Positions 31,780-37,145 of a DNA stretch of 64,000 bases are shown here, piece after piece. The position numbers were made by a program, and so were the translations under genes. This DNA is from Salpingoeca rosetta (lineage: Eukaryota; Protista; Choanoflagellata), in assembly GCA_033442325.1 (NCBI GenBank), contig JAWQFM010000003.1, positions 1,626,175-1,690,174 of the forward strand, given 5' to 3'. Under the pieces are notes generated by a model. It did no database searches and was not told where the DNA came from. It saw only the letters and a list, made by a program, of their open reading frames with translations. Every line of letters begins with the position of its first letter. Position 1 is the first letter of the stretch.

Positions 31780-34700
31780 CGACGCTGCCGGCATAATGCG
31801 TTGATATCTTTGTCGTCTTTGGTTCTGTGTGCGTTGACTCTTGGCCCACCCGTCTTCTCTGCCCACGTTGCTCGCATGCTCGCTCACTCACTCACATGCT
31901 CACTAACCCCCCTCTCACTCACACGCACACGCACACACTCTCTGTATCCACTCGTTTTGTTCTTGTGTTGCAGACAATGTGACCGTGAAGCTGACGGAGA
32001 TTCTGTTGCGCACTGCCCACTTCAGTCAAGACCCTGTTGTTGCCTCCTTCCTCTGCGCCACGCCATCACCCGAGCAGCCATCGCCGCTCCTCTCCCTCGT
32101 GCGCAAGCTCTCCTGGCGCCTTCCCCCGCTTGTTGAGCCGTTTGTTGCCGAGATCTGCGCCGTTGTTCGGTCTGTTGCCGCGCACATCAGCATTGCAGAT
32201 GACCTGCAGCGCCGGCGCACGATGCAGACATCGCCGCTGGAGAAGCACGAGCTCGTTAGGGAGACACTGGAGAGGCACCGCGGCCACACGGACGCAGAGG
32301 TGGTAGAGGCTGTGCTGATGATCCGTGAACACATGCAGGAGGACGTTTTGCCTGCGCTCATCGACCTGCTGCACGGCGTTGTTGTTCGTGGGGACAAGTG
32401 GACCACAGACTCCGTCAACTTCATCAACATCTGCCCGGACCAGGTGCAGGGGGAGTTCCCAGCGCACCTGGCGCGCGGGTACTTCAACCGCAAGGACAAG
32501 CAAGTCAACGGCCGCGCCGTCTTCTACAACCGCATAGTCAAGCGCACACTGTACTGGAGTGCTGCTCGCTCGCGCTGGGAAGTGGCCAGTACGGTTGCCG
32601 AGGACACGGATAAGTTTGTGGAGGCGTACGCCAAAGAGGACTGCATGTCCCCGGACGTGGCCACCACGTGGTATTTCTACCGCCGTAGAAACGCTTACAC
32701 GCGAGGGTTCGAGCCCATGCAACGCGTCTGCATGGAGCAGGCCCCATCTGGTGCGTTTGTGCGCGTTCGTGTGTGTGTGTGTGTGCATGTGTGTGCGTGT
32801 GCGTGTGCGTGCGTGTGCGTGCATATGCGTGTGTTGTGCTAGGTCTGTGTTCTGCATTTTGCGACTTCAGTCCCGCCACAAATTTCTCACTTCATCCTGT
32901 GTTTTGTCCATTTGTTTGGCAAACATTCAACACCACATGGACTTTCTCTTGAAACACATGGACGGTCTCTTGAAACACGTGGACGCCCCTTTTGTTGTAC
33001 TTGACAGGGCTGCGGTTCCAATATCTGGATGCGCTTGTGCGGACAATTGCGGAGCTGATCAAGGCGGCGGGTCTGCGCATGGCAACTGCAAGCCCCATGA
33101 TGCAGCAGATGCGAGATGTTCTGGACCACGCCATCGCCCGCGTCAGCATCGGTCACCCCGTCAACTTTGACAGCCCGTCCCTGCTCCACCTCTGCAGCCT
33201 CGTGTGCGACATTCCCGCCAACAATAATGATGGCTTCTTCGATCTCATCACAGAGTGCGCGCGTGTCAACTACTTTCACGGCTTCGTGGCCGGGTTTGAC
33301 CTCACAGCCACCATGTTCCTGTCCACGCTCAATGCGGCGGATGGCGTCACGCCGCAAGCACCACCACCAGCACCAGCACCGCCACAGCAAGCCGCCTCTG
33401 GAATATCTGCCGTCACTGAGGATACCAGCGCGGGATCTGAGCAGCACCAAGAGCAAGGCCCAAGCGCGGAGGCAACAGAGCAGTGGGCGTTTGTGCAATT
33501 CTTCGACCGCATCTTCAAGGGCCGCGACTTGCTGTTCAATGCGATTGTTCGGCTTCGAAGCGGCGAGCGCCTTTCTCGTGCCATTGGCAGCGCCCCTAAG
33601 CTAACAGACGAGCGTGGAGAGCTTGAAGTGCTGATGGATGGCCTTGCGCGCCTCGACCACTGCATCGGCAAGTGCGTCACCTACCGCATGTTTTCTCTCT
33701 TCCTGGATTCCTTTGGTAAGCTGGAGGACACGCTGCTGCAGGCCGCAGATGATGCCCGCACCGCAGCGCAGGCCGAGGCGCGCAGGGCCTTGGAGCAGCG
33801 TGCTGTCATGCATGGCGTGGGCCGCTTGTCTGCCCGGGAGGCTGCCGTGGACGCAACAGCCGCTGCTGCTGACGACTCATCTTCAGCCCTGCGCGTCATC
33901 TCGGCATCGACTGTGGGCATGGACATTGCCAATGCAAACCTCGAATCCCTCCTGCGCGTGCTTGCCGCAACCAAGAGGAACGCAGCGTGGTCGCACACGC
34001 TCAGTGCCCGCGTTCCACAGCTGGCCAAGCCACTGGAGAGCGTGGTGGTGATGGCGCGGGGGCTGCCGTACGCCCTGCCGCAATTCATCCTGCTGCTGGA
34101 AGAGGCGGTGACAGACAGCTGGACCACAGCCACGACACCAACCAGCCTGCATCGCAACCCTGTCTCTGGCCACCTCATTGAGCTGCTTGCCAACATGACC
34201 GAGCACGCGGTTGCTCGCGGTGGGCTGACTCACCGACATCACCAAAGCCACCACGACCGCCGCCGCCACTACGACGCCAACGCCGACGCCACTACGAGTG
34301 TCGATGATGATGCTCGCCAGCACGCACTCGACATGCAACTTGTGACCTCCACCATCTTCCACGCCAACCCGGTGCCTGTGCTGGTGTCGCTCATGTGTGG
34401 GCGCCAGCTGCACAACAACGTGTTTCGCACGACGGCCGATCTTGGCACGCAGCTATCCTGGTTCACCAGCGCCCTGCGTGCCCTGGGCAACCTGGCCAAG
34501 TCGAAGAAGGAGCACCGCCTGCGCATCGTGCATGAAGGCCTTATCCCTGTCCTGCTCCGCTTCCTCATTGTCGGCAACCTCAAGCTGAGGCACAACGCCA
34601 CGCGCTGCCTCAACGAGACACTCAAGTTCACGCCGGAGAGCGTGGACGAGTTCCTGCAGCAAAGTGGACATCTCACGGTACTGCGCCTGGCCCAGGAGGC

Positions 34701-37145
34701 CAGGAACGAAGACATTGCCAGCACAGACACGCAGCTTCTTGGGTCACTGCTGAGCGTGCTGGCTGCCATTGCATCCGTGCCTGCCGGCGCCAACGCGCTG
34801 CTTGATGAGCCCGAGTTTGTGGCGCTGTTGCGGGAAGCAGTTGATGCGCAGACACGAGCGGTGGAGGGCATGGCGGTGTTTGATGCGTCCCTAGTGAGCC
34901 TGCTCATGTGCGACCAGGTGAACCTGCTGTTTGTGGTGCTGCGGCAGCTGCAGGTTCCAACCAGCATGAACACGGTGCGAGCAAACCTCGCCAACCTCGG
35001 TGACGCCCTCATGCAGAAAGGGTTCCGCAGTAACATGGAGCGCGTGGAACGGTGGCTGCACCACGACCAGGGCAGCGACAGCGGTGGTGGTGTTGGTGTG
35101 ACGGGCATTAGCGCTGTGCCCGGCGATGGTGCTGCTGATGAAGAGGATGAGGAGGATGATAACCTCGTTGACGGCACACCGATGCAGCCGGAACACGAGA
35201 GCGACTGTGACACGCTGCTCACGGGGCACCTGACCACACGCCAAGGGCAGCAGCTGTCACGGCGTGAGACTTACGCGTACCAGCTCGGCACACTCGCTGA
35301 TGTGTGCACGGAGAAAGGTGCTGGTGCAGTCAGGAGCGCCACGGCACAAGGCCCATCCAGCGCACAGGAGCAAGCACCGCCACCAAAGGTGTTCTTGTCC
35401 TTCAGCTGGGCGCACCAGGTTACCCAGGAGCAGATCTGCGAAGCTCTTAAGCAAGCTGGCTTTGATGTCCTCCTCGACGCCAACTACAACCGCTCCCAGG
35501 TGTGTGTGTGTTGTGTGGATGTGTGTGTGATGTGTGTGTGTGTTGTGTGGATGCGTGTGTGTGTGTCTATTTTGCATGTGAGTTGCGTGTGAACCAACAT
35601 TTGGTGCGGGTTGGTTTGTATTTTCTTCAATGCGTCCAAGGATGGACTTGAAGTCTTACTTGCCACAACATGCGGGTCTTGCTCCGAGTCAACTCTGACT
35701 GATTCATGCTGTTGTATGGTTCTGTCTCATACACCCACACCCTGTGGTAGGCGCGGACGTTGAGCAGCGTTGCTACGGCCGTTGCAGATGCAGATGTGAC
35801 GGTGGTTGATTACTCCCCGGATCACGACAAGTCCTACAGGTGCAACGCAGAGCTCATGTTCATCCACAAGTACCGCAAGCCCTTGTTCTTTGTGAAGACA
35901 GCTCGGGCATCGGTGAGTCGACCTTTGTGCCGGGCTTCTCGTGCTACCATATCTGCGAGTCTGACTGTATGCATGTGTGTGTGTGCAGTCGTGTGAATGT
36001 GTGTGAATATGCTTGTGTAGTTGTGTGTTTGCGTGTGTGTGTGTGTGTTTGTGTGTGTGTGTTTGTGTTTGCATGTGCGTGTGACATTGAAACTCGATGT
36101 GATCAATGTGGTTCTCACACGCGTGCTCAACCCACTGCCTGATTCGCTTGCGTGCTGCGATGTACCCTCGCTTCCGCTCCTTGTCTGCCCTGTGTGCAAT
36201 TGCAGCCACCAAAGGAGAGCCCGCTGGAGGTGCTGTATTCACAGCACATGCAGTTTGATATGACGCGGTCCGTACAGAGCGATGACGTGGCACTGCAGCT
36301 GTGCATGGCTCTCAAGGCCCACTTCTACAACCCAGCAACAACAGCCATAACAACTGGAATGTGCACGTCCGACCCCGTTCTGATCAAGTTCGTGTCGGAT
36401 GCTGGTGTCGCAGCCAGCGAGGTGCTGCCTGTTTTGCAGCGCCGCGGCGTGTGGACCTTTGACCAGCTTCTGTCACTAACGCGGCACGATGTGGATTCGC
36501 TGCCATTGCCTGTGCCAGACAGGGCTGCGCTGCAGGCCAAGATGGATCTTTTTGAGTATGAGGTGCTGGTGACCTTTTTGCGGCGCGTTGGCGCTGCCTC
36601 ACTGCATGCGCTGAGTGCCCTGCGCAGCCACGGCGTGCTGTCGTTTGCGATGCTGGCAGCGCTTGGGCGTGACGAGTTGATGCATATGGGCTTGCACATG
36701 GGTGACATTGTGCAAATTCTCAACAACAAGGGGAGCTTTGACGCGGACGCTGCACTGGCTCAAGTGAGGACACACCGTGGTGGTGGTGGCGGGTCTTGGT
36801 CGCAGCCCAGCGGGCTTGAATCGCAGCCCAGCTGGGCGTTCCCACCGCTTTACCAGCAGCAGGCCCCAACACAACAGCAGCAGCAGCAGCAGCAGCCGCA
36901 GCAGCAGCAGGGGGAGGCGTCGGGGAGTGGGCAGGGCGGCTTGTCAAGCCCGCTGTCGGATGATGTGCTTCGTGCGCTGCAACGGAAGGAGCAGGAACTT
37001 ATGCAGGCGCAGCAGGAGATGCAACGACAACAGCAAGAGCAAATGCAGCAAATGCAGCAAATGCAAAGGCAGCAAGAAGGGCGTGAGCGGCAATTGCGAC
37101 AACAACACCAGCAGGGGCAACAAGTGGAGCGTGAGACGCAACAGC

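Follow-up and report, generated by a model that had tools for sequence, protein, structure and literature searches.

A probable ARM-TIR module gene with added SAM domains in the choanoflagellate Salpingoeca rosetta

A stretch of 64,000 nucleotides of the Salpingoeca rosetta genome (GenBank assembly GCA_033442325.1, contig JAWQFM010000003.1; C3:1626175-1690174 in the coordinates used here, and referred to below as the window, from whose first letter positions are counted) harbours a genuine spliced and weakly expressed gene of about nine exons and about 2126 amino acids. The predicted protein combines armadillo (ARM) repeats, two SAM domains and, between them, a TIR domain that bears a candidate catalytic glutamate. 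By sequence comparison the gene is one of three ARM-TIR-SAM paralogues of the species, located on C3, C11 and C30. It is probably best understood as an ARM-TIR module gene with added SAM domains and not as a rearranged SARM1: its core would be an ARM-TIR module of the sort found widely among animals, green algae and choanoflagellates, to which SAM domains would have been added in this lineage, one of them, SAM1, by duplication in this copy. An initial annotation of the locus had described it as SARM1-like parts in a permuted order. The domain content and order it proposed, ARM-TIR-SAM-SAM, hold on the spliced transcript; the relation to SARM1 has to be seen differently, as discussed below.

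The gene model spans positions 29030-37915 of the forward strand, and its nine exons encode 2126 amino acids before a single stop codon at 37913-37915 (Table 1). Public RNA runs were compared over 30750-36749. An X4 contig (5787 nucleotides, depth 93.3) and an X7 contig (5566 nucleotides), coming from two independent studies, are collinear with the exon pieces: they consist of 30803-31621, 31973-32749, 33007-35497, 35749-35911 and 36205-36749 with nothing in between, and their borders differ from the model by one or two ambiguous bases. Since these contigs contain no introns, they derive from spliced RNA, and the three TIR exons therefore join in frame. The introns missing from them are exactly those proposed from the genomic sequence in the initial annotation, whose exon borders all fit the GT..AG rule and the reading frame. 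The gene start, placed there at 33008, turned out to be only the start of an exon. The gene reaches upstream to at least 30306, and its initiation codon is probably the ATG at 29030; the overhanging end of the RNA contigs, ahead of 30803, corresponds letter for letter to 30428-30457 and so belongs to a further exon ending at 30458. Translated comparison (tblastx) of the 5' region with the C30 paralogue was uninformative, being swamped by GT/AC microsatellites. All splice sites of the gene are canonical, and the exon joints fit the reading frame. A minor unspliced signal is present in the first TIR intron (35500-35750), where one X4 contig has a depth of 8.65, the spliced form reaching 93.3, and a few raw X23 reads are found.

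The division of the TIR domain over three exons, suspected from the outset, is borne out by the joints spliced in RNA and by the matches to the Pfam family TIR_2 (PF13676). The matching pieces are collinear, and their scores amount to 39.8 bits as a simple sum of separately scored pieces, against a gathering score of 28; the middle exon of the C11 paralogue exceeds the gathering score by itself (31.1 bits). Once spliced by script, the TIR aligns without a break over both exon joints to TIR_2 proteins at 26-30% identity over 85-119 amino acids: 29% over 119 amino acids with P0007, 28-30% over 88 amino acids with P0005 and P0006, and 26% over 85 amino acids with the S. rosetta protein PTSG_05259. 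In this alignment the Glu of the alphaC motif SYRCNAEL stands opposite the Glu of the C..E motif in PTSG_05259 and P0005-7. A profile of the middle exon matched plant TIR NADases (nicotinamide adenine dinucleotide-cleaving enzymes), namely SNC1 and an RPP1-type cyclase, as well as TLR1/6 in the Protein Data Bank (PDB), and the candidate Glu aligns to the Glu of the CL.EL motif in SNC1 and the RPP1-type TIR. The GAG codon at 35850-35852, singled out earlier as the alphaC glutamate, is thereby placed on the catalytic position, at which Glu is invariant in four paralogous TIRs of the genome.

The ARM-like helical region, formerly located at ~34440-35000, is substantiated by profile comparison. 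Pfam yields weak matches to ARM_ARMC5, HEAT_EZ and Arm at amino acids 482-581 of exon 7, corresponding to 34453-34752. In PDB searches a designed ARM protein was matched at an expect value (E) of 4.6e-5 by the single sequence, and at E 8.9e-23 by a five-row family profile, followed by importin-alpha, Vac8 and UNC-45. The profiles recognise tandem repeats of ~42 residues, with five stretches matched on the designed ARM 4rv1, and these matches mark the repeats as canonical, importin-like armadillo. No SARM1 chain was found at E <= 1 with the family ARM profile in the PDB, which is a test at the level of sequence only.

The two SAM-like domains reported to follow the TIR are both upheld, SAM2 by its fold and SAM1 by homology to SAM2. 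Pfam matches of SAM2 to SAM_EPH (19.5 bits) and SAM_2 lie below threshold. The structural comparison suggested for the protein was run on this domain: an AlphaFold2 model built from a five-row alignment has a predicted local distance difference test score (pLDDT) of 93.4 and helices at residues 2-12, 17-25, 31-35, 39-44 and 49-58, and nearly all of its 50 best Foldseek matches are SAM domains (probability 0.9-1.0, template modelling score 0.7-0.8, root mean square deviation mostly 1.3-2.3 Å), including those of EphA1, EphB4, p73, p63, tankyrase and Ste11. The model thus predicts the five-helix SAM fold for SAM2. SARM1 is absent among these 50 matches. SAM1 has no Pfam match; in local alignment it reaches z 10.3 with SAM2, a score attained by none of 2000 shuffles (0/2000), and z 9.9 with the SAM of C11. 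Judged by these alignments it is a diverged duplicate of SAM2, and its status as a SAM domain is derived from that homology. Against the PDB the SAM profile gave just marginal matches to the Ste11 SAM (E 0.4-0.7), and neither this profile nor a piece comprising the C-terminal part of the TIR and both SAM domains matched the SAM of SARM1. The same piece produced a poor single-sequence AlphaFold2 model (pLDDT 47) with meaningless Foldseek matches, and the SAM piece gave a weak lead (0.77) in the ESM Atlas. A homodimer prediction for SAM2 scored 0.00 with the alignment unused and is evidence neither for nor against binding.

A search of the assembly (55.4 Mb, 68 contigs) revealed at least 48 TIR_2 matches and two full paralogues of the gene, at C11:~109961-113113 and C30:~705400-711100, which share 42-52% identity with it over the helical and ARM part. 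A fourth gene with the same type of TIR lies on the minus strand at C33:~205000-207000 (L019); it has a short N-terminus, the same TIR exon triplet, and then ankyrin repeats and a Roc-type P-loop. As these partner domains differ, the same exon triplet has been combined with different partners. Both TIR introns occupy the same positions, in the same phase, in all four paralogues, and the motifs DYSP, S..C..EL and K.RKP.FF.KT are kept in all four. The SAM content varies: the C11 paralogue has one SAM, the C30 paralogue has the conserved SAM and a SAM-like domain after it, and in the gene of the window a further SAM precedes the conserved one. The number and position of SAM domains thus differ between copies, and the SAM tandem found here therefore arose by local duplication instead of being inherited as a SARM1-like pair.

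The affinities of the TIR were examined in a tree of 21 TIRs with supports from the Shimodaira-Hasegawa-like approximate likelihood ratio test (SH-aLRT); animal SARM1 and the sequences of the ARM-TIR cluster A0A0B7AZE4_1, introduced below, are not part of it. The four paralogues form a monophyletic group (SH-aLRT 90) with L009 and P0007 as its sister (SH-aLRT 82), apart from the SAM-TIR group, and a broad clade of SY.W-type TIRs (SH-aLRT 98) holds the family, L009 with P0007, and the SAM-TIR group. L009 and P0007 appear to represent an ARM-TIR-like lineage with which this TIR groups. The phylogenetic placement envisaged in the initial annotation has in this way been obtained for the family relative to the SAM-TIR group, in a tree from which animal SARM1 is absent.

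ARM-TIR proteins are known elsewhere. A very large TIR cluster, A0A0B7AZE4_1, has TPR-clan (ARM) repeats directly before a TIR in which the Glu is present, and its hosts include molluscs, amphioxus, tunicates, gar, flatworms, Volvox, Gonium, Chlamydomonas and S. rosetta itself, with F2TVE2 and F2TXA0 (preprint 10.64898/2026.04.20.719644). The protein encoded in the window resembles members of this cluster in having ARM repeats directly N-terminal to a TIR_2-type TIR, the betaA motif SY.W..Q/K and the alphaC motif S..C..E with its Glu; tested cluster sequences share the motifs SY.W..Q, VW.D and S..CR.E with the family. The C-terminal SAM domains, the N-terminal extension of ~1100 amino acids and the Q-rich and acidic tail are not listed for the cluster. 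ESM Atlas look-alikes of the ARM part belong to unnamed or TIR_2 clusters and are commonest in rotifers, and these look-alikes fit membership in the ARM-TIR cluster. In choanoflagellates, Richter 2018 (PMC6040629) noted combinations of Arm and TIR, and the ecTIR-DC classes of invertebrates (PMC6321704) offer a comparison for ARM-TIR proteins.

What the protein has in common with SARM1 is a set of ARM repeats, a pair of SAM domains and a TIR that carries the alphaC Glu. It differs from SARM1 in domain order (ARM-TIR-SAM-SAM against ARM-SAM-SAM-TIR), in being about three times longer, in lacking a Trp four residues before the Glu and, by eye, the insertion that SARM1 has before alphaC, and in having ARM and SAM domains with no detectable SARM1 match. 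Members of a large cluster normally have ARM followed by TIR, and the order seen here is therefore not a permutation of that of SARM1. Since the TIR groups with an ARM-TIR-like lineage and not with PTSG_05259, the likeness to SARM1 lies in domain types only; it would represent convergent use of the same three types in a protein assembled independently. Hence the part of the initial annotation that spoke of a permuted SARM1 finds no specific SARM1 kinship in the ARM and SAM searches to lean on, while its suggestion of an independent assembly gains from the TIR tree, from the copy-specific SAM tandem and from the lack of SARM1 matches to the ARM and SAM domains.

Two other groups of TIR proteins in the same genome help to place the gene. 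PTSG_05259, which we take to be the S. rosetta representative of choanoflagellate 'SARM1 homologues', corresponds to locus L003 (C14:846640-847395, 100% identity). It shares with the present protein the SY.W-type clade and the Glu in the same motif, its TIR being 26% identical to the one described here and 32-33% identical to those of the paralogues. It differs in having 581 amino acids with the SAM before the TIR, a SARM1-like SAM (matching SARM1 SAM 6o0s) and no ARM detectable in its N-terminal 290 amino acids. Its TIR matches those of the bacterial NADases Cat1 and AbTIR better than any SARM1 TIR chain, and a homologue search with L003 returned PTSG_05259 and no animal SARM1. Choanoflagellate 'SARM1 homologues' with a conserved Glu were reported by Richter et al. 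2018 (PMC6040629). The second group is a multi-copy family of nearly identical COR-A/COR-B-TIR-SAM_2 genes (L004-L008 and L014-L016, L015 lying at C13:1706318-1706632). Its proteins likewise carry the TIR upstream of the SAM, and differ in a TIR of an unrelated clade, in Roc-COR instead of ARM, and in a SAM unrelated at the sequence level. As this family is multi-copy, the order TIR before SAM is common in S. rosetta. By eye, the TIR segment of L015 matches the TIR of F2UB80, which has been reported as a producer of cyclic ADP-ribose (cADPR), the figure legend listing no SAM for F2UB80 (10.64898/2026.04.20.719644). Going by this resemblance, the order TIR-then-SAM in S. rosetta can accompany an active TIR of the F2UB80 type.

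Because the protein and SARM1 have these domain types and the alphaC Glu in common, a SAM-driven, ARM-restrained NADase is a reasonable working model for the protein. The SAM domains would drive self-association, which would gather the TIRs so that Glu1537 could cleave or cyclise nicotinamide adenine dinucleotide (NAD+), and the ARM repeats with the adjoining helical region might restrain the TIR or sense a ligand or partner. NADase activity is plausible from the sequence features of the TIR; that the protein is a SAM-driven, Glu-dependent NAD+-processing enzyme is a tentative proposition, to which we give somewhat less than an even chance. The related SY.W-type TIRs of Latimeria H2ZXV5 and oyster A0A8W8J0Z4, in which Asn or Tyr stands four positions ahead of the Glu, made cADPR (Table S4 of 10.64898/2026.04.20.719644), and a Trp at this position is therefore not required.

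Several observations weigh against the reading we prefer. From its motifs, its architecture and the indirect link in the tree via P0007 and L009, the TIR of the family likely belongs to cluster A0A0B7AZE4_1, and four tested TIRs of this cluster have no entry under 'Active' in Table S4, which covers assays in Escherichia coli lysate (10.64898/2026.04.20.719644). The TIR of this copy has the longest branch in the family (1.08 versus 0.05-0.44), reads VLLD instead of VW.D, with loss of the betaB Trp, and has a BB-loop unlike that of its paralogues and without Gly. The initial annotation had already pointed to divergence of this TIR, correctly as regards VLLD; the other sign it named, VVDYSP, is a family trait, with IIDYSP in the paralogues. 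Finally, raw RNA reads are few, numbering 8 and 25 in two runs of 2026 from which ~16 million records each were read, a scarcity that indicates low expression.

These points bear on three competing explanations. A non-catalytic scaffold or adaptor, in which TIR and SAM domains serve only a MyD88-type assembly and the Glu persists for reasons of structure or history, is a doubtful alternative of some weight. The inactivity of the four cluster TIRs despite their Glu favours it, as do other Glu-bearing TIRs without detected activity noted in the same preprint (10.64898/2026.04.20.719644), the fast evolution of the TIR in this copy with its changed betaB Trp and BB-loop, and the long ARM, polyglutamine and acidic regions, which would suit a scaffold. 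On the other hand, all four paralogues keep the Glu and the motif S..C..EL although 53-61% of middle-exon positions differ between them, related SY.W-type TIRs are active, and a TIR that is inactive by itself in E. coli could still be active upon oligomerisation. A decaying or mis-assembled locus, whose TIR exons would be relics and whose protein would not be made as modelled, could account for the low raw-read coverage, the unspliced signal in intron 35500-35750 and the long TIR branch. Such a locus would hardly yield a continuous spliced contig in two studies, an unbroken open reading frame of more than 2000 codons, exclusively canonical splice sites and invariant TIR motifs; a pseudogene or artefact is rejected on these grounds and has a next to negligible probability.

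The remaining explanation holds that an ancestral ARM-SAM-SAM-TIR protein was rearranged by movement of the TIR to a place before the SAM domains, in which case the parts would be orthologous to those of SARM1 and an octameric mechanism gated by nicotinamide mononucleotide and NAD+ would have been kept. The same three domain types and the Glu are what such a history would leave, the TIR falls in the same broad SY.W-type clade as PTSG_05259, and, PTSG_05259 being without detectable ARM, the proteins of this family are the only ones encountered in the genome with all three domain types. Yet the ARM profile finds no SARM1 among its PDB matches, the SAM pieces match no SARM1 SAM whereas the SAM of PTSG_05259 does, and the best structural neighbours of SAM2 are the SAM domains of Eph, p73 and tankyrase. 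Moreover, the SAM tandem is specific to one copy, the TIR is sister to L009 and P0007 and not to the SAM-TIR group, and ARM-then-TIR is the normal order in a separate large cluster. The evidence from ARM, SAM, tree and domain order leads us to reject a rearranged SARM1 as very improbable, and to retain an ARM-TIR module with added SAM domains as the preferred account.

Table 1. Features of the ARM-TIR-SAM gene and the evidence on which each is based (positions in the window)
Feature	Position	Strand	Evidence
Exon 1 candidate with start ATG	29030-29137	+	Inferred: in-frame upstream stop, GTACGT donor, fitting frame; outside RNA coverage
Exon 2 candidate	29367-29438	+	Inferred: AG/GT borders, phase 0; 61% identity over 23 amino acids to the C30 paralogue (short tblastn)
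Exon 3 candidate	29595-29678	+	Inferred: AG/GT borders, phase 0
Exon 4	30306-30458	+	3' end confirmed by RNA; acceptor 30305/30306 inferred
Exon 5	30804-31626	+	RNA contigs X4, X7; Cys-rich and hydrophobic segment
Exon 6, conserved region	31974-32750	+	RNA contigs; 35% identity to metagenome fragment P0001; no Pfam family
Exon 7: helical region, ARM repeats and first third of TIR	33008-35499	+	RNA contigs; 42-52% identity to C11/C30
Core armadillo repeats	34426-34830	+	Pfam ARM_ARMC5, Arm, HEAT_EZ; PDB designed ARM; family profile
TIR part 1 (betaA-alphaA-betaB)	35386-35499	+	TIR_2 positions 1-31, 25.6 bits, E 1.8e-5; profile matches bacterial TIR 3h16
TIR intron 1, phase 0	35500-35750	+	GTGTGT..TAG; absent from RNA contigs; position common to three paralogues
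TIR part 2 (alphaB-betaC-alphaC-betaD)	35751-35912	+	54 amino acids; TIR_2 positions 43-86, 14.2 bits; 43-47% identity to paralogues
Candidate catalytic Glu, GAG	35850-35852	+	Codon 34 of middle exon, amino acid 1537 of model, alphaC motif SYRCNAEL
TIR intron 2, phase 0	35913-36205	+	GTGAGT..CAG; joint 35911/36205 in X4 and X7 contigs; position common to paralogues
TIR part 3 (betaE-alphaE)	36206-36340	+	21-26% identity to paralogues, all starting with PP; no Pfam match of its own
SAM1	36371-36547	+	Insertion relative to C11 and C30; homology to SAM2; only in this copy
SAM2	36554-36733	+	SAM conserved in the family; AlphaFold2 and Foldseek; 38-39% identity to C11/C30
Q-rich, polyglutamine and acidic tail with stop codon	36746-37915	+	Frame open to 37912, translation; RNA coverage to 36749 only

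Outside the three domain types, the N-terminal ~1100 amino acids and the Q-rich and acidic tail match no Pfam family. The N-terminal region contains PH-like exons, a Cys-rich stretch and one hydrophobic segment, and belongs to no known family. The hydrophobic segment (amino acids ~355-380, Kyte-Doolittle value 1.98) may be a membrane anchor. The exons at 30804-31626 and 31974-32750 contain two stretches with a motif resembling NGR..Y....W and without a Pfam match. In the tail, 36900-37912 comprises a very long CAG or polyglutamine run (~40 Gln) within a Q-rich segment, followed by an extremely acidic stretch of Glu and Asp; the Q-rich segment may form a coiled coil. In most introns read in the gene, a long GT or AC microsatellite stands at the start or elsewhere within, for example at 29140-29240, 31627-31800, 32757-32833, 35500-35572 and 35975-36075. 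Retention of the intron 35500-35750 would end translation at 35590-35592, ahead of most of the TIR.

Relatives outside S. rosetta are scarce. A HMMER search with the 830-amino-acid exon among 1.84 billion representatives returned, beyond the species itself, only three marine metagenome fragments (P0001-3), which are 35-55% identical and lie on contigs of 1.3-1.8 kb that end short of the TIR; L001 and L002 come from TARA and another marine metagenome. P0001 runs on without a break where S. rosetta has the intron 32751-33007. Protein homologue searches with the SAM piece and with the large exon of the C11 paralogue gave no match, nor did two metagenome scans, one using the TIR-exon profile and the other the ARM profile.

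The genome of S. rosetta has been public since 2013, and the novelty of the gene is limited in that the ARM-TIR class is known and widespread, Arm+TIR combinations have been reported in choanoflagellates, and the order TIR-then-SAM is common in this genome. TIR enzymes activated by oligomerisation have central roles in bacterial, plant and animal immunity and cell death. A more far-reaching version of our reading, which we consider rather unlikely, would have the choanoflagellate-specific family on C3, C11 and C30 arrive independently at the design of SARM1: an ARM-restrained TIR, activated by SAM polymerisation, acting as an NAD+-depleting or cADPR-signalling executor of responses to infection or stress. 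The copy described here would then be a specialised member, possibly anchored in a membrane by its N-terminal hydrophobic and Cys-rich region. The family touches on the question of how many times evolution has joined a TIR to a regulatory repeat domain and a polymerising domain in the manner of SARM1, and the genetic tools available for S. rosetta make the family testable.

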